Below, piece after piece: positions 11,289-63,121 of a stretch of DNA of 64,000 nucleotides. The notes under the pieces are model-generated. The model saw nothing but the letters and a program-made list of their open reading frames with translations, had not been told where the DNA came from and did no database searches. Made by a program: the position numbers and the translations under genes. Position 1 is the stretch's first letter, and each line of letters opens with the position of its first letter. This DNA comes from Podarcis melisellensis (Eukaryota): assembly GCA_964234715.1 (NCBI GenBank), contig OZ174275.1, one strand, 5' to 3'.

Positions 11289-11453
11289 CATAGCTGTCAA
11301 CTTTCAGATTTGAAAATAAGGGATCAGCAGCCTCACCTGTCCCGGGGACTGTCTACGGGATATCTAACAATCTGGGATAGCAGCAGGAAGCAGCAGGAAA
11401 CGGCGCTGGAATAAGGGATTTCCCGCCAAAAAAAGGGAAGGTTGACAGCTATA
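11289..11453. mobile_element. hAT-type MITE, intact (CATAGCTGTCAAC family)
   Basis: 13-bp TIRs, perfect 8-bp TSD cttcatca. Confidence 0.9.
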
Positions 11454-42780: not shown

Positions 42781-45700
42781 TGTGCTTAAGAGCACGATGG
42801 GAAGTGAATATTTCTGCCTGTCAACATGTATCGAATGAGAAGTTACAGGCTGAATAACCATAGCTGTCAACTTTCCCATTTTTAAAAGGGAAATTCCCTT
42901 ATTCTGAATAGGATTCCTCTCAAGAAAAGGGAAAAGTTGACAGCTATGTGTATAACAGGGGTCAGCAACCTAAGGCCCATGGTCCAGAAGCGACCCACGG
43001 AGGTTGTTTGACTGGCCCACGAGCCACCCCTGAACTGAGTTACCCGCTTGCACACAGCTCAGGACTCGCTTCCACGGCACCGGAAATCGGGTTTGTGCAC
43101 GCGCAGATGCCAAAAATCACATGCGCGGTCCGGCCCGCAGTGGGATCTCCATGGAACCAATCTGGCCCAGACAAGATAAAGCTTGCTGACCCCTGCTGTA
43201 TAATATAGAGAGCCCCATGAAGGGCTTTGTTTGAAGGCTGATCTGATCATATTCCTTTACTACTACTCTCCCTGCCTTGTATGTGTTAGTAGTTCTTGTT
43301 CAGGAAGAATAGAGACATATTCTTTAATGTATATTTATTACATGGCTAGGAGGAATGAGATCAAGTAGTGGGAGCTTTGGAGTTAAGCTATTTAACACAG
43401 CATCGGCGTAGAGTCACAAAGAGTAAACGGGATGATCATAATTGTATGTTTATGATGTTACTAGGAGGAATATGATTAAAGGATGTTATTTTTATAGATG
43501 CTTTTTTCCTTTCAAAAGGCTGCAGAACTAAGGGCTTACCTGAAATCTAAGGGAGCTGAGATATCAGAAGAAAATTCTGAAGGTGGACTTCATATTGACT
43601 TGGCTCAGATCATTGAAGCATGTGATGTGTGCCTGAGGGATGATGATAAAGGTTGGTGTTTGCATAATTTAGGAAGCTATTGATAAGCATCTGACCTAGG
43701 GTTGTGATCTAGTTCCTTTTAAATTATCTGCCTTCTAGAAAAGTGAAATGTTCTCCTTTAGGGCATAATTGTATACAAGGGGCCAAGTTTTACAAGTGGG
43801 CACAGCTGCCTACCTGTCGGTTACCTGATGATAAATCTAAGTCAAAGGCTAGAGTGAGGCTTTTATTTAGAAAAATAAGAACACTGAAGTGGAACATGAT
43901 AAACATACTGTTATGAATAGTGTGGAGTAATTGGGTAGAACCTGACATTTCCCAATGAATTTGTTTAGCAGTCAATTTCAAACAGAAAAAAATCAAGTGC
44001 TTCTTCACACAATGTATAATTAATTATTCATACATTGTATAATTAACAATGGGGTCCTGATTTCCACAGCTGTGCAGAGGACAGGGGTGTAACAGATTTT
44101 TGTCTGATGCCAGTTATCAAAGTAGTCATTGTAATTTTTTATACTTCATTTCAACACCCTTCAGACAAAAACAAAAGAGTTGTATGGATGTATCTATGGC
44201 CTTTTAAACTGGGAGTGTGTGTTTCAGTTTTTGTTATGCATTTTTGTGTCTTTATACCTTAAGCTGCCCTGTGATGCTTGCATGAAGGGTGATATAGAAA
44301 TTCAATAAATAAATAAATTGGAAGTCAAGTAAACATGCCACAGTTACTGTTGGTGTTTGCAAAAAAAAAATAATTGGTCCATTAGTCTAGAAAGGGTTTT
44401 CTGTATGCTGTATTAACCATGTAAAGCTGAGACAGTCTTACCAATGAACAATTCAGTGTCACATTTTTCATTACAGAAATATGTTTTTGTTTTTCAATAT
44501 AGATGTTGAAAGTGTGATGAACAGTGTAGTATCTCTGCTTCTTATTCTGGAACCTGACAAACAAGAAGCTTTGATTGAAAGTCTGTGTGAGAAATTGGTC
44601 AAATTTCGGGAAGGTGAACGACCATCACTCAGACTGCAGCTGTAAGTGACTTAGGTGATTGAATGGAATAAATATGTCTTGTACCACAATTCTTTTTATT
44701 CCATGAGAAGCAGGATTTTTGGCAGAATGTATTAAGAGTATCTTTGAGTGGGTCAGTAAATTATGTCTGGGCTTGATGGCCAGTCATTAGTGTTTTCCAA
44801 TCAGTTGTAGGGTAAAGGACCCCTGGACAAGTAAATCTGATCTCACCACAATAATGCTTTGAGTTAGATGCACTAGAAGCAGCGGTCTGGGAACGGTGTG
44901 GAATTCAAAGAAATAGATAGATAGATAGATAGATTCTTTATTGTCATTACACAAGTGCAACATTGCACAAGTGCAACGAAATTGGATGCCATCCCTTAAA
45001 AACAACAAAAACAAAACAACAACAACAACCAAACAAACCACATTCCAGCCGCACCCACACCCACACCCATCAAACTCCCAGGTCACACTATCGAGTTACA
45101 GCATTCAAAAAGGCCACAGCTCTTGGGTAGAAACTATTTTTCAGTCTATTTGTCCTTGACTTGATGTTTCTATATCTCCTGCCAGAAGATATAAATAGGG
45201 TGCCTCTGTCATTCTGGGACTAGTTAAGGGCAGCTACTTGCCATCACGCTTTGTATTCTTAAAAAAAGAAAAAGTACAAGTTTATCCGGTTGAAGATGCA
45301 CTGCAGATTGTACACTAGTACAAAACATACATACTATTAAAAGAGATTTTGGCTGCAGTCCCATGTGCATTAACTTGGAAGAAAGTCTTACTGAATTTGT
45401 GCAGCTCACCTCTGAGTAAGCATGTGTAGGAATAATTTTGTACTGCTGGAAAAGAGAAGAGAGAGGTGGAACCTAAGCAAATAAACACTTGTTAGACACA
45501 TCGATTTTATTCAGTATTTTATTTACATACCAGAGTAAGCAAATTTATTAAAAGCAACACTTAAATAGAAGCTCTGAAAGCCACCAGGTTTTTTGCACCA
45601 CATGCTGCTAAATACAGGTATGACACATTTTAAAAGGGAATGTTAGGCAAATGTGGATATATGCTACAATGGATATGTCTAGTTTTAAATCCCTCTCCTT

Positions 45701-48700: not shown

Positions 48701-51700
48701 GACTTTTATTATCCTTTTATCCAAGAGATTTATAGCCTGCCCTTCATCAATATTGTGTCGTTTCAATTACATTCATTCTCAGGAGCAAGATAGTGGAAGT
48801 AAGAAATTGTACTTTATAAGTGTAGTAATTGAGAATAGAGATTTCAGTAACAGAAGAGTGAAGCCCTCCCCACTCCTGATAATATCTGCTCCTTGATTTT
48901 CATACAATTTTCAGCATTACTTTGCTTTTTAATGATTGTATCCAGATGTGTTCTAGTAAGTCGTGTAAAGATGTTTCCACCTAAGAGAGAAAATTCTGTA
49001 ACTGGCAGGTAATTTATCAGTTTAAAAGTATAAAATATACTGTAAAGTTCTATTTAAAAAAAGAGAGAGAGAGACCCCTGAGACTGAATGACTATGTAGC
49101 TGTTTTACCACTTTGGTACCATTGACAGTCAAAACTCCTACATCCTTTCAAGTGCACTTTTCATTTGAATCATAGCTTCACAGTGCCTTTAACTATCTGA
49201 CCATCTCCTTTGATACTCCCTTTCTCATACAGCTAGAATTTTGGGGTCATCCAATGAATCTGAATGTTGGAACATTCAGGAGAAACAATAAGAAGCACTT
49301 ACTCACACAGTGTATAATTAAGCAATGGAAATTGCTCTAACATAACTACTGCATGTACGGGACGCGGGTGGCGCTGTGGATTAAACCACAGAGCCTAGGA
49401 CTTGCCAATCAGAAGGTCGACGGTTCAAATCCCCGCAACGGGGTGAGCTCCCGTTGCTCGGTCCCTGCTCCTGCTAACCTAGCAGTTTGAAAGCACATCA
49501 GAGTGCAAGTAGATAAATAGGTACCACTCTGGCGGGGAGGTAAACAGCATTTCCGTGTGCTGCTCTGGTTCGCCAGAATTAGTCATGCTGGCCACATGAC
49601 CCGGAAGTTGTACACCGGCTCCCTCGGCCAATAAAGCAAGATGAGCGCCGCAACCCCAGAGTTGGTCACAACTGGACCTAATGGTCAGGGGTCTCTTTAC
49701 CTTTAACTACTGCATGTAGTACAAGCAACAACCATCTTAGACGCATGCAACTGATGTGCAACCATCACACCGACCCCAGAAGTGGCTGTAAAAGGGGGTG
49801 GGTTGGGGGCGGAGTGGGCTTGCACGTGCTCTGCTGACATGTGTGGGGTTCAGGAAAGCAAACCCCCACGCAAAACAGTTGTCGCCTGCTATAATTGCTG
49901 ACTTGGACAGGGGTTGAGGCAAGTTCATAAGCTATGAACTACTTGAGAACCGGAGATTATATATACCTTTGAATGCCTGTTGAGTGGCAGAGAGCTGTCA
50001 CACTCGGTTCCTTCCCATGTGCATCTGGTTGTGAGCACAGGATGCTGGTTTAGTTAGGTCTTTGTTCTGATCCATCAGTTCTCCCCTTACGCTAAGTTTG
50101 TACATTTTGAAATGATTTTAAAAGGAAGTACTGTTTCTTGCCCACAGTGATAATGCAGCAAAAGTAATGGTAGAGCTGCTGGGAAGTTACACAGAGGACA
50201 ATGCTTCTCAAGCCAGAGTTGATGCTCACAGGTAATGTAAACATTACAAACTACATTTAGGATTGTTTCATGTGTTAATGGTCAGTGAAAGTTTCAGTAA
50301 CAAGAAATGCAGCCCCAAACATGCTAAATTCTTATTCCTCTCCCCACTCTCCAAATACTTTGCTTGCCACTTCAGATTTGTAGATGAATGCCAAGGGGTT
50401 TTGCTAAAACGTTTTGCTGATGGTGAGAGCACAACCAGTAATGTGTGGGATGTGCAGGGATTCTTAACTGAATACAGTCATACCTTGGTTGTCAAATGGA
50501 ATCCATTCCGGAAGTCTGTTCGACATCCAAAAACATTTGACAACCAGGGCGCAGCTCAAGCGGAAACTGCATTGGGTGTTTGGCTTCCAAAAAACGTTCG
50601 CAAACTGGAACACTCTTCCGGGTTTGCGGCATTCAGGAGCCAAAACATTCAAGTTGCAAGGCATTCAAGATCCAAGATACGACTGTACAAAATATCTCCC
50701 ACATTAGAATGCCTAAATGTCACCCTCTTACTTTTACGAAGTGGTTTTGTTGTTGTTGTTGTTGTTTGTATTTTAGTGATGGCCAAGACCTGTTGGTATA
50801 AAAATAACCTTCTTGTCTAGAGTAGAAGAAAAGTTCAGTTGAAGTACATGTCTAAGACAGTTGTGCGTTTCCTGTCCAATTCCTTTACAATTTCTGCCCA
50901 GACGCAGAATCTGTGTGCATGAAACGGCAATTCTTTGACTTCTGTCTAGATCTTAATGTTTGTAGAAAATACCAGTTGAATGCATCATCAACATTTTTAA
51001 ACATTATCTGAGACTGTGTAAAATGCCTTTCCAATATCATTCTGTAGTTCATCTGCCCTTGCAGTGATGCATAGTTAGGGCACTTGGCTCTGCTGCTTAT
51101 TGGGACCTCAGAGAAAAGTGCAAACTATGTAGATGTGTTTTTTAAGGGTGCTTCCCCCCCAAAAAACTATTCTACTGTTAGGGTTATGTTTGTTTGTTTG
51201 TTTAAGTTATACACTGAATAGATTTCTTCAAACAGGGAGATGTTCCATAATATTAAAGAAAACATACTCTAGTTTGGACTCCTGTTGTAGCTGCCATTGG
51301 TTTGGGTTTGTTATGAATGGGGCAGTTTGGAAAGGTTTATATAAGGGCAGTAGGGAGAAATACCAGCTTTGGTAGTTCTTCCAGGTAGTAGCAGCAGTGA
51401 GTCATATGTTATTATGGTGGAAAGTAGTGGGGGGAAGGGTTAAATTGCAGTTCATGCAAGTGTAACAGGCAGGAGGAAAGTGTCTCCTTGCAGGTACAGG
51501 AGGAATGTGGAGTAACTAATATTTGGTATAGAAAGGAGATCAATCTGCAATTTTTTTGTTGGTTTCCAGTTCCCTCCATTTTGCATGAAAAGCAGTTAAT
51601 ACTTTACTGTAAGTCTACTTGATCTGTGAAGCAGAAAGCCAACTACAATAAAATATACGTAACTGTTGTCTGGGGCTGGTTCATGGCCAGCCACACAGCT

Positions 51701-54700
51701 AGGTAGCCAGACTCCCCACCTTTTTGGGACAATGATAGCACAGAGAAAAGATTTTGTTCTGAATAGCCTTTTGTTTTCAGTGAATGTTCCTGCAAACGTA
51801 GACCTAAAAGTTTGGTAGGCATCCCTAAATATAGATGCATATTTAATTGTGTCATGGAAGAAGACAATTGGGCAGGCTTGCTTTTATATATAGGTGTTAC
51901 AGATGCACACCACTTCTTTCCCCTTACATCCCATAACATTTTCAGTGTTAGGCAAATCCCTCTCTCCCCCCCCCCCAGGCTTCTTAAAGAGAACACTCAA
52001 CTTTGATTAGTTTTTATGCTGCTTTTGTTAGTTATCTCTTAACCCAATGTGTTTATATGTATTTATGTTGTATTTGTAAATACTGTTCAAGTGTTTTTGG
52101 AATACACTTTGATTTGGAGGTTGTTTTTGCAGAATGGTTTTTAAAAAAGCTATTAAATTAACTAGAAATGCATTTTTTCTTCCTTACACTTTACTTTCCT
52201 AAATAGGTGTATTGTCCGTGCATTAAAGGATCCTAATACCTTTCTCTTTGATCACCTTCTCACCTTAAAACCAGTCAAATTTTTGGAAGGAGAACTTATT
52301 CATGATGTAAGTATTAATTTCTAAACTTAAATATTAAACACTTGGCATGCTGCATGTGAGATAAAATTGCTTGACCATTTTAGTGGGATTTCATCACACA
52401 TAAGTTATTTTGCATTGTGTTGTTTATAGTGTCTAGGTTTGCATGTCATGCTAACCCTTGGTTTAGCGTGATGTGAACCATTAGGAAATAAGCCTTGAGC
52501 TAGCTAGTTATCCTCCCCTCACCCCTAGCTTCTGGAAGGAGTAGCTTAGAATATTTTGATTTTCCTTTTGTTTGATCACAGCTTGCCATGCTCAGATCAA
52601 GAAATTGTGGTCAACATTAACTACAGTTTGTTTCAGACAGACCAACTTTAAACATAGTTACTGAAGCCATCTTATTTAAATTAGAGTTGAGAGAAGTAGG
52701 CCTCTACAACAAAATGTTGTAATCTGGAGTGCTTCCGGATTCTGGATGACCATTTCATTTATCCTCTTCACCTCACATTTCTTCTTCAACCCTGCTCAGA
52801 CCTCATTGGGCTGGGTTATTTTTGGAGGGTGTAGCGGTGAACCCACTTGTGCTCAATCCCAATTGTATTAAATTCTTTAATTTCACCAGTAGCACTTAGG
52901 CATTTCCTTCTTCCCACCCAATTGATAGGGCCACCCTCCCCGGTTCAGGGTCTTAATATGTTTGGGGATTTTCACCTTTGTCAATACCGCCCCATACAGA
53001 TTTTTGTTGTATTTTTACATACCGTATTTTTCGCTCTATAAGACACACTTTTCCCCTCCTAAAAAGTAAGGGGAAATGTGTGGGCGTCTTATGGAGCGAA
53101 TGCAGGCTGCACAGCTATCCCTGAAGCCAGGAGAGCAAGAGGGATTGGTGCGCACCAATCCCTCTTGCTCTCCTGGCTTCAGGGATAGCCTTCCGAAGCC
53201 TCCTTAGCGCAGCAGGAGTGTTTCTGCTGTGTTCAGGAGGCTTTGGGATGCTATCCCTGAAGCCAGGAGAGCAAGAGGGATCGATCCCTCTTGCTGTCTT
53301 GGCTTGGCTTCACTGGAGAGCCACTGCGCAGCTTTCCCTCTCTGCTCAGCACCCCTTCAGCAAAGCGGCAGGAGAAACGGAGCCCCTTCCATTTCTCCTC
53401 CCGCTTTGCTGGAGAGGCGCTGCGCAGAGAGGGAGAGAACATTTTTTTCCTTGTTCTTCTCCTCTAGAACTAGGTGCGTCTTATGGTCGGTGCATCTTAT
53501 AGAGCGAAAAATACGGTAGCTAAGGGATACCACAAGTTTACTGGTACTTCTTTCTTCAGCATTAGTCCCTACAGAAGCATAAGCACAGGAAATATGAATT
53601 TGTATTAGTAAATAGAAAAGTGAGACCAGTGTATCTTGGGGGGAGGGTGGGGTGGGTGTGACATAGTTGACATCAAATATTGAGTTCTTTCTCTAACCTG
53701 GTTCTGTCTTCATATGCATATTTTTAATTTTGTTTTTGAATGTTTAAACGTGCAACCAGTCTGCATGCATCAGTGGAGCGTGAAAAAGAGAGTGAAAGGT
53801 TTTGCCTGGGAGGAGCTTGGAAGGGGGCTGATTAGCTTCTGGTGGACTATTTTGCTGTAATTTCCTCTTGGTACGGGGGGGGGGGGGTAAACACCCTGCC
53901 CAGTCTCCATCGCATTAAATGCTTTCAGTCTGACACCAATTTAACTTTTACTTCCCCAGTTACCCCAGCATCCAACAGTCTCATGCAATAGAAACATATT
54001 TTTGAATAAGATGTTGAGGACAAGTGGCTCACGACCATCTTAAGTTTCCCATTTAACTCTAGTTAGTTAAAAGAAATCAAACCAAGATTTGATCCTAATT
54101 GGTTTTAGCTAACTAGACTTAAAATAAACTGGGCTGTTAATTATGGTCTGCTTTTGGAAAGTATCCCCCCCCAAAAAAAAAATTGGTTTACAATAATTTG
54201 TACGTAGCAGGAAACTGGTTTAGTCAAAAGGGAAAGTAGAAGCATTCATGCTCATTCTGATCTTTGCAGAGGAGGAGAAAGATGGGGTAACCTTGTGACG
54301 GGCAATCTGTGGCCCTTCAGGTGCAGTTGGACTTTATCTTCTGTCATCCTTGAGTATTGGGCATTCCAATGGAGTTGATGAGAATTTGAGTCCAACAACA
54401 TCTGGAGGGCCCCAAGTGTCCTACCCCTTCTGTACACCATGGCAGCTTGAATTCAACCGGTATTTTCTGTTCTGTTCTCTAAATGAAATGTTCAGGAGAC
54501 ATCTGTTAAATTAGACATGTTCATATCTTGTTGTGTTCTCACAATTGACAATTTCTTTCTTTGTAGCTTTTGACAATTTTTGTTAGTGCCAAGTTAGCAT
54601 CCTATGTCCGGTTCTATCAGAACAACAAGGACTTCATTGATTCTCTTGGTAAGTTTTTTTTTTCTTTCTTTTTTAATGCACATTTGGTGTACCCAACACA

Positions 54701-57700
54701 TATGGCTGTGATATAAATGTAGCTCAGCTACTCAGAAGGAGGTGCTGTGACTGGACACTTGCTCTGCTGACTGTGTCTAGTTCCAGGATGAGTACCCTTT
54801 TTTGCCTTGTGGGCACAGTTACCCCTTACCAGCCATGTGGAGGCTGCATACAGATTAGCTGAGGAGGGGGGAGTAATGGCTGCTATCCCATAGCTGTCAA
54901 CTTTCAGATTTGAAAATAAGGGATCAGCAGCCTCACCTGTCCCAGGGACACTCTACGGGATATCTAACAATCCAGGATAGCAGCGGGAAACGGCGCTGGA
55001 ATAAGGGAATTTCCTGCAAAAAGGGGGAAGGTTGGGAGAAGGCCTTTGACAACATTTCTTGGCTGTTTATGAAGAAAAATTTGGAAAGGATGGGAGTAGG
55101 GCGGGGGTTTGAAAATGGAATAGAAGCAATTTATTCAGAACAAAAAGCCAAATTGATAGTAAACAACGTGGTGACAGAGGAGTTTAAAATTGAAAAAGGG
55201 ACACGACAGGGGTGCCCTCTATCTCCTCTGTTGTTTATTTCAGTCCTGGAGGTGCTACTGAACATGATTAGAAATGACCGGTTGACACAGGGAATTGTGG
55301 TCGGAGAGAAACAATATAAACTGAAAGCTTTTGCAGACGACTTGGTATTGACATTACAGGAGCCAGCCTCTAGTACTAAAAGAGCGTTAGAATTAATTTC
55401 TGATTTTGGTCGGGTGGCGGGATTCAAGCTGAATAAACAAAAAACTAAAGTTCTAGCAAAAAACTTGACAACTACTGAAATAGAGGAGTTCAGAAAAGAA
55501 ACAGAACTAAATGTGGTTAAAAAAGTAAAGTACCTAGGGGTGCACTTGACCTCCAAAAATTTGAATTTATTTAAGGATAACTATGAGAAATGTTGGTCAG
55601 AGATAAAAAGAGATCTGGAAACATGGTCAAGATTAAAACTTTCCTTGCTGGGCAGAATAGCTGCTCTAAAGATGAATGTATTGCCGAAAATGCTATTTTT
55701 GTTTCAGTCCCTCCAGATCGTGGATAAGGTGGAATGTTTTGGAAAATGGCAGAGGGATTTATCTAAATTTGTCTGGCAGGGCAAAAAGCCCCGAATAAAG
55801 TTTAAAATACTAACAGATGCGAAAGAAAGAGGGGGGTTTGCCCTGCCGGACTTGAGGTTATATTATGAAGCTGCAGCCCTCTGCTGGTTGAAGGATTGGA
55901 TTCTATTGGAGAACACCGACGTCCTTGACCTGGAGGGATTTGATAATGCTTTTGGGTGGCATGCATATTTGTGGTATGACAAGGTTAAAGTTCATAAATT
56001 GTTCAAAAACCATATTGTCAGAAGGGCAATTTTCATGGTCTGGTCAAAATATAAAGACTTATTGGAGAGTAAAACTCCGAGGTGGCTCTCACCGATGGAG
56101 GCCAAAGCACGTAAAAGACTCAATATGGAGGCCCACTGGCCTAAATATTGGGAAATAATTGAAAAAATTGGAGATAAATGGAGGTTACAGAGTATGGAAA
56201 AGTTAAAAAACAAGGTGCGAGATTGGTTGCATTATGCTCAAATCCAGGAAGTTTTTAAAGCAGACAAAAAAGTGGGTTTCCAGGAGGAAAAATCGAAACT
56301 AGAAACAGAGTTGCTTGAGCCAAAATCTAAGCTAATTTCGAGAATGTATAACTTGCTGCTTAAATGGAACACACAGGATGAGATTGTCAAATCCTCTATG
56401 ATAAAGTGGGCACAGGATTTGGGGCATAACATTATGTTTGAAGACTGGGAAAGGTTATGGAACACCGGAATGAAATTCACGGCATGTACTGCCTTGAAGG
56501 AAAACATTATGAAAATGATATACCGGTGGTACATGACCCCAGTCAAGCTTGCAAAGATATATCACCTGTCCGATAATAAATGTTGGAAATGTAAGGAAGA
56601 GGAAGGGACATTTTTACACCTCTGGTGGACCTGCCCGAAAGTGAAGGCCTTCTGGGAAATGATACATAATGAATTAAAAAAGGTGCTGAGATTCACCTTA
56701 CCTAAGAAACCGGAGGCCTTCCTTCTGGGCATGGTAGACCAGAGGATGGTCAAGAAAGATAGAACTTTCTTTATGTACGCTACTACAGCAGCGAGGATTC
56801 TGTTGGCAAAGCACTGGAAGACACAAAATCTACCCACATTGGAAGAATGGCAGACGCAGCTGATGGACTATATGGAACTGGCTGAAATGACTGGCAGAAT
56901 TCGAGACTCGGGAGAAGAAGAAACGGAGGAAGTTTGGGAAAAATTTAAGGACTATTTGAAAAAGCATTATAAGTTGTATGAATGTTAAAAAATGCTCCTC
57001 TCTAGGAAGGTATAGCTTCAGTATCGGCAAATTTCTGAATTGATAAATAAGACACTATAAGACAGAAGTAAGGTAACGAAATATTTTTATTGTGTGGAAA
57101 TTAAAAATTAATGCAATTGTATTGAAATGTTCACATCAGATAACACGATAAAATGGAAGATATATTGTTATGTATAAAACAAGTTAACAAATTGCTGAGG
57201 TTTTGGTTACACAGGGAATGCAGTGCCCGGGAGATGGGGGGAGTCCATTGGATTTATGGAAGTATGTATTTGAAAGTGGAAATTTGTTTATTAAAAACCT
57301 AATAAAATATTTATTAAAAAAAAAAAAAAAAAAGGGGGGAAGGTTGACAGCTATGCGCTATCCGCTTACCAAATGGTTGCTTTCATGACCAGGGAGGGGC
57401 AATTTGCATCCCCATCAGGGCACTGGGCTTCACCCACTCCAGTCCTGTTCCCCCAGCCCCTGCTAGCTCCAAAATGTATGGGGTCTGAAGGAGCCAGGAA
57501 AATTGGCTGCATGGAGCAGGGATCAGATCAGGCCCCTGAACTTGTGGTTTGCCACCCCTGGCCTCAGCATTTAAAGTTTCTTCTTGGGTTCTCCAGTCCT
57601 CTTTGAGATTTTGTCCACTCCTTCCTTCACCATTTGGAATGGATCCCACACTCCAAGGCACTCAGGCGCTTTACTGATCTGCAGGAGAGTTGTTCCCAGG

Positions 57701-60700
57701 GTGCTTATGTTCTACCACAATAGGGCTTTCTTTCCAGTTGTGTGATTTTAGTTACATAATATCAAAAAATGTATCAGAATACAGTTTAGTTTAGCGACTA
57801 TTCATTCTGAATTGAATGCTTTTCTTTTGCTGTCTTTTGTGTTTGAACTGTGGTTTTCAAGCATCCACTTGGAAAGTCACAGGAACAGTAAATCCTGTGG
57901 GAGCAGGTACAGTCATACCTCTTGTTACGTTTGCTTCATGTTGCGCGTTTTCAGGTTGCGTCCCGTGGTGACCCGAAAGTACCAGAAATGGTTACTTCCG
58001 GGTTTCGCCGCTCGCAAAATGACGTCATGCGCAGAAGCGGCAAATCACAACCCACGCAGACACGGGTTGCGTTCTGCTCATGTTACATACGGGGCTCCGG
58101 AATGGATCCCATTCGCAACCAGAGGTCCCACTGTATTATTATTGAATCTGCATTTCTAAACTGAAAATAGCCAGTTTGAGAATTCTGACATCACTCCCAA
58201 GTTATATCCACTACGTTATTCATAGATGAGAGGTAGAGAGAGTAGATTTCCCAGTGTTTATTGTCTAAATGATTAAGAGCCCTGTTGTTGGAGTGAAGAT
58301 AGCCTCCATCTTGTCTTCTTGCTTTTCTTCAGTTGGTCACATACTCCACCTGTGCACTGAGCAAGCAGCAGTTATCAACAGTGCTGCATGAGTGTTGAGG
58401 GGGAAACCCGACATAGTGCCAGAGTGCTGCATAAATGACCTACCAAGCCTTGTGGGGGCAGCCCCATTTACACAAAGCTGGCAATGGATTGTGCAGCAGA
58501 GAAACATGCAGGCTACTGCATGGGCGAGGTGCTGTTTGAGGAGCAACCAAACCCCCTTGTTGTAGGATCATGATGTGAATCAACCACATCTCCCTCTAAC
58601 AAGGCTGAAGTACAATCAGATTGAGTACTTGCAAGTGTTCTTATGCAAGCTTAATCTTTTTGCGGATGCATTAAACCTTGCAAACCACATTCTGTCCCAG
58701 TTAATATGTTTCATAGGATGAAGCTTTGTGATGGAATGTTAATGTCAGCAGCCTCTTTATTTACACACTGTGGAAAGAAAGGAGTAGTAATTAACACTTT
58801 GACACTCCCCCATTGATGTGTAATTGACTGTTTCAAAGGAGCACTGGTTCATAAGCTATTGCATGCATGAAAATTACTTTTTCTGTATTGCAGCATTTTA
58901 GGACAAGGGTCAGTGACAATGCAAAAATTGTTCAATGATGCAAGCTTTTATATTATGACATTAAGGTTTAGATATACTGGTAATGAATAAATGTTTCCAT
59001 AAAATTGGGGTTTAAAAAAATAGTGACCAGAATGGAGGTTAATTTTATTTGAAAAGAAAAGGGTAATAGGCTTTAAAGCATACAAATCTTTTTAGGACTA
59101 GGTAGAATCCTGAAAACAAAGGTGAACATTCCTCAATTTAAGATAGAAATTTTAGAAAGAGAAATATATTATTTTTCTTAGTGAAAACAAAGAAAGCTTT
59201 TCAACTTATGGTAGCTGATATAGTCACTGCTTGAATATTATAAAAGCATGCATGTGACTATAGTGCTCATTAAATATCAGGTATTTTTTTAAAAATATGA
59301 GTAATGGAGCCTCTCCTAGGATGTTACCATAGATTTGATTGTGCCAATCAAGTGCATTCATAGGCAACTTGTTTCATTTGGGTGTAGTATAAACATAACA
59401 AATTCTTGTGCAATGGATTGAACCAACTAATCTACTTCTAGTATACTTCTAGTAAACCCATTGAAATAAATGGATTTAAGTAACTTAGGTTCTTTGATTT
59501 CAGTGGATCTACTCTTGAGTATGACTTGGTCATCCATTGTCTGTGTGTGAAAATAATGTATTTTTTATGTATTTGAAATGCATTCAGATATGGAGAATAG
59601 CACTGAACAGATCTAATTATTTTTGGGCCAACCGATTAAGCCAGCCCAAATTGTTGGGGTTTTTTAAAAAACTTTTATGGTATTGGAAGTAATACTCTAA
59701 ATGCTAGTATGCTTTTAAAAATATTTTCTATTTTTTACAAATTAATGTTTTCCCTTATTTTATCCCCCTGCTGATTTTATTTTTCTTCAAAATTAATAAC
59801 AAGGCTTGCCAATCTAAATCATCTATTCAGCAAAAGCTCTCACAGGTGGCATCAGTTTGTTACAATGTGTTGTTTTATTAATGCTGACAAGTTAGGCCAA
59901 CAGTTGTATTATCATGTGTCAACTGTGAATCGCCCTAACATGTTCACATTTAAATCTGGTAGTATGGGCAACCTTTTTACTTTAGCAGGGTAATTAACAT
60001 CTCATTTGCATTTGTTAATTAGAGTTTATGAGCACTAATTGATTTTTTGTGCTTGTAGATTTCCATTAAAACCAGTTAGCTATAGTTTCTGAAGCTCCCT
60101 ATTCGCTTGAGTTATGATGATCACATTTTTGTTGAATTGGTGCCAGATAAATAGCCTTCATCATAATTACTGCTAATTAACACAACATTATGTCTGGTAG
60201 TAATGTGCTTCCCTGCGCTTCTATTAGTCTAACAGTGTTATTAATTCCAAACATAAATATTTGTTGAGTGTTCAGGTTATCTCATCCATACTTCTTTTCC
60301 AATGTCTGAAACTTTAAAGAGACTATTTTACAGAAACGTTATTCAACTATTTTGTAAAAAACAAATAACAAAGTAAATTTACACCAACTTATTTTTTGTT
60401 GGCCATTTCATGTATTGCTGCATATTGTATTATAGCCTTCCCCAACCTGGTGCCCTCCAGATGTTTTAGGACTAGAATTCCCATCCGCCTCAGGAGATGG
60501 GGAGAACTGCTGTAACATCACACTTTTGTATCCTAAGAACTTCACAATCAATAGCATTTGTAGAATTCAACAAGATGGCATATTATCTTCTGTTCCTCCC
60601 ATGAAATGAATGCATAAAATACAAATTGGTCATAATATGGAATGAGTAATATCAACAAGAAACTGAACATGTGTCTTCCATAAACCTACAACGTATTTTG

Positions 60701-63121
60701 AAATCAGTTCTGTACCTACCCTAAGAATTAAGGACCGTAAGAGTTGACACTTGGAAAGTGAACCTCTTGCAGAGGGGATGGCAGGTCACAGTTGCCTCAG
60801 TATGTCTCACTTGTACTATAGAAGGGGATTGTTAACTGAGGTGTGTAGGGGGGTGCAAGTAGTATGTTAGGTACTTAGTATCTCTTCCATGCTGCATAGA
60901 TGAAAGGGGCGGTAGGATCACACCTACTAACTCTGTCCTGACATTGGTGCAACATCTGCTAGATGAGTGTGCAAAGAAAAAAATTAACATATTTTTTGCT
61001 CTATAAGACTCACTTTTTCCCTCCTAAAAAGTAAGGGGAAATGTGTGTGCGTCTTATGGAGCGAATGCAGGCTGCGCAGCTATCCCAGAAGCCAGAACAG
61101 CAAGAGGGATTGCTGCTTTTGCCGCGCAGTGATCCCTCTTGCTATTCTGGCTTCTGAGATTCAGAATAATTTTTTTCTTGTTTTCCTCCTCCAAAAACTA
61201 AGTGCGTCTTGTGGTCTGGTGCGTCTTATAGAGCGAAAAATACGGTAGTTGCATAAAAGCAGCCAGTCACAGAAGCACCAACTGTTTTTCATACAATGGT
61301 TAAGATTTCTTGGAAGCATTTTGGTTTTCCAAATATTACTTCATATCTAGCACTCTGCCACTGCTGAGCTCAGAACAGAAGCCAGCACCAGGTGACAATG
61401 GAGGATGACCCTCAATCCTGAACAAATAGGCCTACTATTCTGCAAGAAGAAACAAACTCATTCTCTATCTTCACCTCCTGTATTCCGTTCTTAATGCAAA
61501 CTGACCTTATCCACACCTCTTGGAATAAATTAAAGATCCAAACATAATACTGTAATCCGTCAGTTTTTATACTGTGAATTTTGCAATGCAGTTCTCCCAA
61601 AAAGTATCTAACTGCCTGATGTGGATCAACAATTTCCTAGCAAAAACTTACACTGTAGTGTGATCTCTAATGCAGGTTTATTGCATGAACAGAACATGGC
61701 AAAAATGCGACTGCTCACCTTTATGGGAATGGCTGTGGAAAACAAGGAAATATCATTTGACACTATGCAGCAGGAACTTCAGGTTGGAGCTGATGATGTT
61801 GAAGCATTTGTTATTGATGGTAAGAGAGGTTATACGATCATACTATATGCAGGCTGATAAGAACTTTACTGGTACTGAAAACCTGTACAACAGTTAATGA
61901 TTTGAAGCAGGCAGTTAGGATGTTACAGTCACCTTTTTGCTTCTTTTGGTAAAGTGCATCATCACTGGGGTGGAAACGGTGCCCATGCTATAATCCAGTA
62001 GCCAGTGTAAAGTCCTGAATTGGGTCATTTTGGGGTAGGGTCCCTTGTAGATTATCCAGACCCAATTTTTTGGTTCTTCGGGTATGCCAGCATGGAGCTG
62101 ACAAGGGGAAGGGGAGCGTATTCCACCCTGGTGCGGATAGCAAACAGGATTGCTTTATTGTTGTAACCACAATTTGAATGCAATAGTTGGCTATGCAGTG
62201 TTTCTTGTACTGTTTTGTGATATATTAAGAAATCCACCTTTTAATTGTTGCTCTTTGTTAAATTGCATGTGATTTCCAGTGAGAACCTCCTTGTAGAAAG
62301 TGCACATTGTACTCTCTTACATATAAAGCACTATGCAAGGCTTTGTGAAATGCTTCCCCGTAACCCTTTTTTCTGCATGCCATGGTATAATGACAAAAAT
62401 TGAACACCCGTTGAAAGGACATCCCTGCATTCACTTCAGTTCCAGGGGATTACTGAAGCTCTTATCAGTCAGGGTTTCAACACATGTTAAAAGAAATTCA
62501 TCATAATTTATTTATTCTTTGCAGCTGTAAAGACAAAGATGGTGCATTGCAAAATTGATCAAACACAGAGAAAAGTAGTGGTCAGGTGAGTCTTAAATCT
62601 TTTTGTGAAGCAACTTAGTGCAGTGCTAATTATAGCACTTAAACATCTGTTTAATATTTTTACTAGACGCAAGATATTNNNNNNNNNNNNNNNNNNNNNN
62701 NNNNNNNNNNNNNNNNNNNNNNNNNNNNNNNNNNNNNNNNNNNNNNNNNNNNNNNNNNNNNNNNNNNNNNNNNNNNNNNNNNNNNNNNNNNNNNNNNNNN
62801 NNNNNNNNNNAAGAATACTAATGAGATTTGTCTGAGGTTTTTAAGTACTGATGAAGGCTGCAGAATACCAGACTAGCTGGTCTATAAAGTCTTGTTTTCA
62901 CATCTTATGTTCTACTTTTTTCTGAATACATATGTACCGAAAATATGGTGCTTTTTTTGAAAGCAGAACTTTGATGCAATTCCTTTTACATTTGTTTTAG
63001 TCACAGCACACATCGAACCTTTGGAAAACAGCAGTGGCAGCAGCTGTATGATACACTTAACTTCTGGAAACTAAATTTGAATCAAGTGAAAAACAGTCTC
63101 CTTAGTTTGTCGGATACCTGA
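42313..63121 (+). CDS. EIF3M: Eukaryotic translation initiation factor 3 subunit M, complete spliced CDS (11 exons, 374 aa)
   Basis: Exons of 42+133+139+124+95+84+100+82+144+61+121 = 1125 nt join in frame via GT-AG introns. Protein runs [39 protein letters not shown]...[38 protein letters not shown], recognisable as vertebrate eIF3m (PCI protein). Confidence 0.98.
42859..42948. mobile_element. hAT-type MITE, short 90-bp member of the CATAGCTGTCAAC family (EIF3M intron 1)
   Basis: Same TIRs; TSD tgaataac/tgtataac. Confidence 0.88.
42956..43195. mobile_element. hAT-type MITE (CAGGGGTCAGCAA TIRs)
   Basis: Perfect 13-bp TIRs; TSD (g/c)tgtataa. Confidence 0.85.
43519..43651 (+). CDS. EIF3M: EIF3M exon 2
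   Basis: ttcaaaag|GCT; [12 protein letters not shown]...VCLRDDDK; donor g|gttggt. Confidence 0.96.
44503..44641 (+). CDS. EIF3M: EIF3M exon 3
   Basis: aatatag|AT; (D)[45 protein letters not shown]; donor |gtaagt. Confidence 0.97.
44913..45188 (-). mobile_element. Rex1/Babar-clade LINE 3' end with (TCTA)n tail
   Basis: Minus strand [24 protein letters not shown] motif, then aatgacaataaag and (AGAT)n on the + strand. Confidence 0.82.
46439..46574. mobile_element. Palindromic hAT-type MITE
   Basis: cagtgtttctcaaac/gtttgagaaacactg, near-complete hairpin, perfect TSD gcatatac. Confidence 0.92.
46786..46909 (+). CDS. EIF3M: EIF3M exon 4
   Basis: ttccttag|A; [41 protein letters not shown]; donor |gtaagc. 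Confidence 0.97.
47340..47434 (+). CDS. EIF3M: EIF3M exon 5
   Basis: ttttatag|G; [31 protein letters not shown]; donor |gtaact. Confidence 0.97.
49359..49705 (+). mobile_element. Sauria SINE, full length (EIF3M intron 5)
   Basis: Canonical head and tail; TSD taactactgcatgta. Confidence 0.93.
50148..50231 (+). CDS. EIF3M: EIF3M exon 6
   Basis: cccacag|T; [27 protein letters not shown]; donor |gtaatg. Confidence 0.97.
50475..50685. mobile_element. Tc1/mariner-type MITE
   Basis: ta|cagtcatacc...gatacgactg|ta. Confidence 0.82.
52207..52306 (+). CDS. EIF3M: EIF3M exon 7
   Basis: aaatag|G; [33 protein letters not shown]; donor |gtaagt. Confidence 0.97.
53022..53516. mobile_element. TcMar (Tc2/pogo-like) MITE with CCGTATTTTTCGCTCTATAAGA TIRs
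   Basis: Perfect 22-bp TIRs, TA TSD, internal palindromes. Confidence 0.9.
54567..54648 (+). CDS. EIF3M: EIF3M exon 8
   Basis: tttgtag|C; [27 protein letters not shown]; ends in phase 1, donor g|gtaagt. Confidence 0.97.
54889..57355. mobile_element. hAT-type MITE (CATAGCTGTCAAC TIRs) split by the L1 insertion
   Basis: TIRs at 54889 and ending at 57355; 8-bp TSD tgctatcc/cgctatcc; body nearly identical to the intact copy at 11289-11453. Confidence 0.92.
55035..57333 (+). mobile_element. Young 5'-truncated L1-clade LINE (RT C-terminal part, CCHC zinc knuckle, 3'UTR, poly(A))
   Basis: Uninterrupted frame to stop at 56988 with [27 protein letters not shown] and CWKC..HLWWTC. AATAAA at 57301, poly(A) 57316-57333. 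TSD aaaaagggggaaggttg at 55018-55034, repeated ending at 57346 with one extra G. Confidence 0.95.
57910..58133. mobile_element. Tc1/mariner-type MITE
   Basis: ta|cagtcatacctc...gaggtcccactg|ta. Confidence 0.82.
60987..61245. mobile_element. Shorter member of the 53022-53516 TcMar MITE family
   Basis: Same TIRs and subterminal sequence, TA TSD. Confidence 0.88.
61676..61819 (+). CDS. EIF3M: EIF3M exon 9
   Basis: taatgcag|GT; (G)[47 protein letters not shown]; donor |gtaaga. Confidence 0.96.
62525..62585 (+). CDS. EIF3M: EIF3M exon 10
   Basis: tttgcag|CT; (A)[19 protein letters not shown]; donor |gtgagt. Confidence 0.97.
62679..62810. other. Assembly gap (132 N) in EIF3M intron 10
   Basis: Run of N. 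Confidence 1.
63001..63121 (+). CDS. EIF3M: EIF3M exon 11 coding part, stop TGA 63119-63121
   Basis: gttttag|T; [39 protein letters not shown]. Confidence 0.97.

Follow-up and report, generated by a model that had tools for sequence, protein, structure and literature searches.

The closest described parallel to the locus treated here is CSB-PGBD3, in which an intronic piggyBac element provides the splice acceptor, the open reading frame (ORF), and the poly(A) site (PMC2268245). For fusions of this type both transcripts and protein have been shown; they are abundant, their conservation spans tens of millions of years, and they carry an intact DNA-binding transposase (PMC2268245, PMC3459987). 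Intronic LINE-1 (L1) elements are a second point of comparison: effects through a cryptic AG or premature polyadenylation are documented in humans (PMC3192792), as is L1 exonization in mouse (PMC2176070), and the documented cases of interference are mostly full-length L1s with an active 5' untranslated region (UTR) (PMC3192792, PMC2176070). We examined a 64-kb stretch of Podarcis melisellensis DNA (contig OZ174275.1, assembly GCA_964234715.1; hereafter, the window), in which EIF3M occupies about 42.3 to 63.1 kb on the + strand. Intron 8 of this gene (54649-61675, 7,027 nt) holds an L1 nested in a hAT-like miniature inverted-repeat transposable element (MITE), and an initial annotation had proposed that the two together make a complete alternative terminal exon of EIF3M. 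We consider it very probable that the locus is an ordinary nested transposon insertion that is spliced out with its intron and that the chimeric terminal exon is a construct on paper.

On paper, the locus shares with CSB-PGBD3 and its kin an upstream host exon, an acceptor, and an open transposon ORF with its own poly(A) signal, all within an intron, and the open frame is continuous with exon 8. It differs in its cargo, which is half of a reverse transcriptase (RT) predicted to be catalytically dead, and in that the fusion is a prediction from sequence. With cases of L1 transcriptional interference, cryptic polyadenylation, and exonization it has in common a sense (tandem) intronic L1, cryptic acceptors upstream, and internal poly(A) signals; in contrast to those cases, the copy in intron 8 has lost its 5' end, and no aberrant transcripts were seen.

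The outer element is a MITE of about 155 bp with 13-bp terminal inverted repeats (TIRs; 54889-54901 and 57343-57355). Its left part (54889-55034, 146 bp, + strand) is collinear with a copy at 11289-11453 and holds both of the AGs discussed below together with 42 linker codons, while its final 9 bp, the end of the right TIR, were placed at 57347-57355 (+ strand) by comparison of the inverted repeats and of the copies. The flanking 8-bp target-site duplications, read directly from the sequence, are TGCTATCC (54881-54888) on the left and CGCTATCC (57356-57363) on the right and match at 7 of 8 positions. The copy at 11289-11453 is complete (165 bp), with a perfect 8-bp duplication, CTTCATCA, on both sides. 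A miniature copy of 90 bp in EIF3M intron 1 (42859-42948) consists of little beyond the two ends and is flanked by the 8-bp duplications TGAATAAC and TGTATAAC; it lacks the TTTCAG that the left end of the intron 8 element shares with the 11289 copy. A 19-mer from the MITE end occurred 5 times in the window versus 0.06 expected, and in sequencing run X17 many repeat copies start at 54888/9, where depth reaches ∼9e5 versus ∼1e2 for single-copy DNA. The element has what the MITEs of the hAT superfamily have: 8-bp duplications (7/8 here and 8/8 for 11289-11453), 13-bp TIRs, a length of ∼155 to 165 bp without coding capacity, and a large number of copies. It departs from many hAT elements, whose TIRs follow a strict YARNG, in starting with CATAG, where the third base is T instead of R. 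The TIRs, the duplications, and the collinear copy thus bear out the initial annotation of two nested transposons with a hAT-like MITE on the outside, and the position of the L1, inside the MITE and 9 bp from its right end, is confirmed.

The inner element was delimited by homology as a 5'-truncated, sense L1 (55035-57333, + strand) made up of ORF2 from EKAFD on, a 3' UTR, and a tail of 18 A (57316-57333). A hexamer scan placed its AATAAA at 57301-57306 (+ strand), and both signal and tail are where they had been annotated. The left target-site duplication (55018-55034; 12 nt exact, 16/17 overall) and the right one (57330-57346, set by repeat-family comparison) begin A-rich, and such duplications are variable in length. 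Pfam RVT_1 matched the ORF at 1.1e-21 over profile positions 76-205 of 205, which is the C-terminal two thirds only. Against a 1,204-amino-acid L1 ORF2 of Podarcis muralis (P0009), a reference with both endonuclease and RT domains, identity was 84% over 600 amino acids, and the alignment began at reference residue 597, precisely at EKAFD. This agrees with the annotated truncation just after the motif-A Asp. In run X20, a family contig likewise aligned from 55035, with the upstream codons ending in MDA left as a loose end. Judged by its sequence, the copy has no endonuclease, no fingers, and no motif-A Asp but has kept FADD and the Cys-His motif. The motif-A Asp is catalytic in L1 ORF2p, and with this residue cut off the RT should be dead.

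The nearest relatives of the ORF are L1 ORF2 proteins of lacertids (Podarcis muralis and P. lilfordi, up to 90% identity), followed by those of Anolis (∼45%). The copy shares with other 5'-truncated intronic LINE-1s of lizard families a homologous ORF2 RT and C-terminal Cys-His motif (77 to 90% identical to Podarcis muralis), an A-tail, a target duplication with an A-rich start, and the truncation itself. Nothing essential sets it apart; here the element sits inside a MITE and in sense within an essential gene. The near-perfect duplication and pure A-tail make it look very young. Among the homologs of the ORF is an NCBI entry named vesicle transport protein GOT1B isoform X1 of Anolis carolinensis (P0077, 938 amino acids), which is 44% identical to it; at E<=0.001, Pfam found RVT_1 alone in this protein (205-459), with no sign of a Got1 domain, so that the entry is either an annotated lizard host-L1 chimera or an annotation artifact.

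Upstream of the nest, EIF3M exon 8 (54567-54648, + strand, 82 nt) has the acceptor tttgtag/CTT and the donor CTTG/gtaagt. The coding lengths of exons 1 to 8 (42, 133, 139, 124, 95, 84, 100, and 82 nt) sum to 799 nt, or 266 codons plus one base; exon 8, whose start is in phase 0, therefore ends in phase 1 at 54648, as had been annotated. Without splicing, the frame runs from exon 8 into intron 8 for 22 further codons and then stops. If instead the AG at 54906-54907 (+ strand; ...caactttcag/at) in the left end of the MITE served as acceptor, where the initial annotation had correctly located it, the exon would begin at 54908, and the carried G would give GAT and then the frame that starts at 54910. 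An ORF scan showed this frame to be open for 692 codons (54910-56988, + strand), 42 from the MITE and 650 from L1 ORF2, up to a TAA at 56986-56988. The theoretical product would thus have 959 amino acids (266+1+692). By direct reading, the junction codon, the composition of the frame, and the length of the product, this last on paper, are all as previously described.

In its strongest form, the proposal has exon 8 joined to the AG at 54907 and the transcript terminated at the poly(A) site of the L1, giving at a biologically meaningful level an mRNA immune to nonsense-mediated decay and a protein composed of eIF3m residues 1 to 266, a linker, and the C-terminal part of ORF2. All of the sequence parts needed for it are there and in frame, and CSB-PGBD3 is a precedent (PMC2268245). 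The frame match itself, however, is no better than chance, about one third: of the 166 AGs from exon 8 up to the L1 stop, 54 read in frame and open to that stop, in line with the 1-in-3 caveat attached to the original claim. Upstream of the L1 body, 2 of 28 AGs give such an open in-frame read (exon starts 54908 and 55031), and for a stop-free run of 42 MITE codons, shuffling gave a probability of 0.10 and uniform codons one of 0.13. An in-frame AG followed by an open ORF is by itself weak evidence, as a young sense L1 in a coding intron yields dozens of in-frame AGs, 54 in this case. We also considered the long ORF as a sign of selection and rejected this; the 650 L1 codons are open because the copy is very young, and the youth of the L1 explains the only ORF of the window longer than 185 amino acids.

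The acceptors were ranked by a rough position weight matrix whose frequencies came from general knowledge, not by MaxEntScan or SpliceAI, so that only the ranks of the following scores are meaningful. The candidate at 54908 (in frame, 693 codons) scored 1.65. Set against the acceptor of exon 9 (61676-61819, + strand), the usual partner of exon 8, it came out ahead (1.65 versus 0.72) but ranked only 32nd among 464 AGs of intron 8 and 10th among the 194 that precede the L1 tail. By this rough matrix it is a mediocre acceptor. The real EIF3M acceptors ranged from 0.72 (exon 9) to 6.16 (exon 10). That of exon 9 (61653-61678; ...gatctctaatgcag/GT) is the weakest, its positions -4, -6, and -7 being purines and an AG lying at -19/-18, and a strong exon 8 donor combined with a weak exon 9 acceptor would allow competition from within the intron. 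Nine AGs before the L1 tail outscore the candidate. These include an in-frame AG inside the L1 (55242-55243, + strand; exon start 55244, score 5.21, 581 codons) and two out-of-frame AGs on the same strand with exon starts at 55717 (score 8.05, stop after 3 codons) and 54946 (score 4.87, stop after 11 codons). A further AG lies 14 nt upstream of the candidate, as the initial annotation had cautioned (54892-54893, + strand; exon start 54894, score 1.11, stop after 6 codons). One branch-like site alone is of decent quality, GUAAU with its A at 54876, and it is upstream of both MITE AGs. Under the scanning model of 3' splice-site choice, the AG nearest the branch site is preferred, and the proximal, out-of-frame AG at 54892-54893, which is of the UAG type, would therefore be favored.

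Polyadenylation also counts against the chimeric exon. Six hexamers lie ahead of the L1's own signal (AATAAA at 55432, 55794, and 56575; ATTAAA at 55632, 56673, and 57100), and they would tend to end transcripts before the stop codon. The first five are within the 54910-56988 ORF, and cleavage at these would therefore produce transcripts with no stop codon.

We compared positions 52100-58099 with four sequencing runs, in which joints with sides down to 21 nt were listed. Run X17 is the source DNA, with zero mismatches over four long single-copy pieces, whereas X2 comes from a related organism with 3 to 5% divergence in introns; X1 resembles low-depth DNA or pre-mRNA. In X2, a 241-nt contig at a depth of 1,524 has exons 6, 7, and 8 joined (52306>54567, GT..AG), and X2 is therefore RNA. 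Exon 7 (52207-52306, + strand), whose boundaries were supported by translation, served here as a positive control for splicing. The contig extends 29 nt past exon 8 as a single dominant continuation, the letters of which are hidden by a repeat mask at 54646-54680. At position 54614 X2 has T where the source has C, a synonymous difference in the third base of a Phe codon of exon 8. No 54648>54908 joint was listed in any of the four runs, which were searched as contigs, offered RNA from the relative only, and carried the repeat mask at the end of exon 8. This speaks, though not decisively, against use of the junction in the relative from which X2 derives.

At the protein level, a word search with the 692-amino-acid ORF in a set of 5.8 billion sequences returned no fusion of the ORF with eIF3m or a PCI part; the best matches were plain L1 ORF2 proteins that covered the L1 part only, 94% of the query. 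A word search with the exon 8 read-through gave 22 short ORFs, all of them across unspliced genomic DNA and hence uninformative on splicing. Neither FIDSLD nor the MITE-derived continuation was present in any of these 22 exon 8-containing ORFs.

Taken together, the parts of the annotated terminal exon (AG, ORF, and poly(A) signal) are present, but a working exon is not borne out by a mediocre acceptor, no listed junction in the four runs, and no protein on record. The AG 14 nt upstream and the stronger AGs nearby count against it as well, and the insertion looks so young that selection has had no time to act. A truncated eIF3m could also be dominant negative, and in an essential gene such a product would more likely be harmful. 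We therefore regard the 959-amino-acid product, made at a biologically meaningful level, as very improbable. It is equally doubtful, in our judgment, that carriers splice a fraction of their EIF3M transcripts from exon 8 into the nest, with 54908 or the stronger in-frame 55244 as the exon start, polyadenylate at the L1 tail, and so make a stable chimera of eIF3m(1-266) and the C-terminal part of ORF2. If this were true, EIF3M, which encodes an essential translation-initiation factor, would have just given rise to a host-retrotransposon fusion gene assembled from two nested transposons.

The L1 might instead disturb EIF3M in another way, through premature polyadenylation with intron retention or through the cryptic AGs with exon starts at 54894, 54946, 55244, and 55717. 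Either route would yield low levels of truncated eIF3m transcripts, an outcome of the gene-breaking or transcriptional-interference type. The element is a sense L1 whose sense strand is 35% A, with the six poly(A) hexamers before its tail; several AGs outscore the candidate at 54908, and intron retention would add the 22 codons before the stop. This copy, however, is devoid of the 5' UTR promoter, to which an important part in the effect has been assigned (PMC3192792). In addition, EIF3M is highly expressed and essential, and past exon 8 the X2 contig has one dominant continuation. We judge such disturbance unlikely overall.

An ordinary nested insertion fits the locus best. A hAT-like MITE of ∼155 bp would first have inserted in intron 8, leaving its 8-bp duplication. 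A young L1 of a lacertid family would then have inserted by target-primed reverse transcription 9 bp from the right end of the MITE, producing a sense L1 that is 5' truncated at ORF2 residue ∼597, with a duplication of 12 to 17 bp and an A-tail. The agreement of exon 8 with the ORF through the MITE AG would be a one-in-three coincidence. Splicing of exon 8 to exon 9 most likely takes out the 2.5-kb nest along with the rest of the 7-kb intron, and cryptic splicing or premature polyadenylation would at most generate rare aberrant by-products.

Several points weigh against this interpretation. The junction search relied on the RNA of a relative, which may lack the insertion, as RNA of the source species was absent from the runs; contigs drop rare variants, and the repeat mask cut the alignment at the end of exon 8. 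The acceptor ranking depends on the rough matrix only, on which the candidate (1.65) is on par with the real acceptors of exon 4 (1.70) and exon 9 (0.72), and given the weak exon 9 acceptor, some competition from 54908 is conceivable. The anatomy of the nest, the frame, and the lack of a listed junction or annotated product are direct observations, whereas we infer that the site at 54908 is not or hardly used, low-level use being possible. Thus, we treat the locus as an ordinary nested L1/MITE insertion and the chimeric exon as an unsupported hypothesis. As it stands, the nest shows that L1s and MITEs have recently been active in a lacertid-type genome.

Other features of the window were found in neighboring introns of EIF3M. 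The second longest open frame of the window, with 185 codons (50263-50820, + strand), lies in intron 6 and had no Pfam match at E<=0.01. Intron 10 contains a run of 132 N (62679-62810). In intron 7, window positions 53020-53519 hold an element of very high copy number that has long inverted ends (TACCGTATTTTTCGCTCTATAAGAC... and ...GTCTTATAGAGCGAAAAATACGGTA) and internal palindromic blocks, at which the depth of X17 reached up to ∼2e6 versus ∼1e2 for single-copy DNA.

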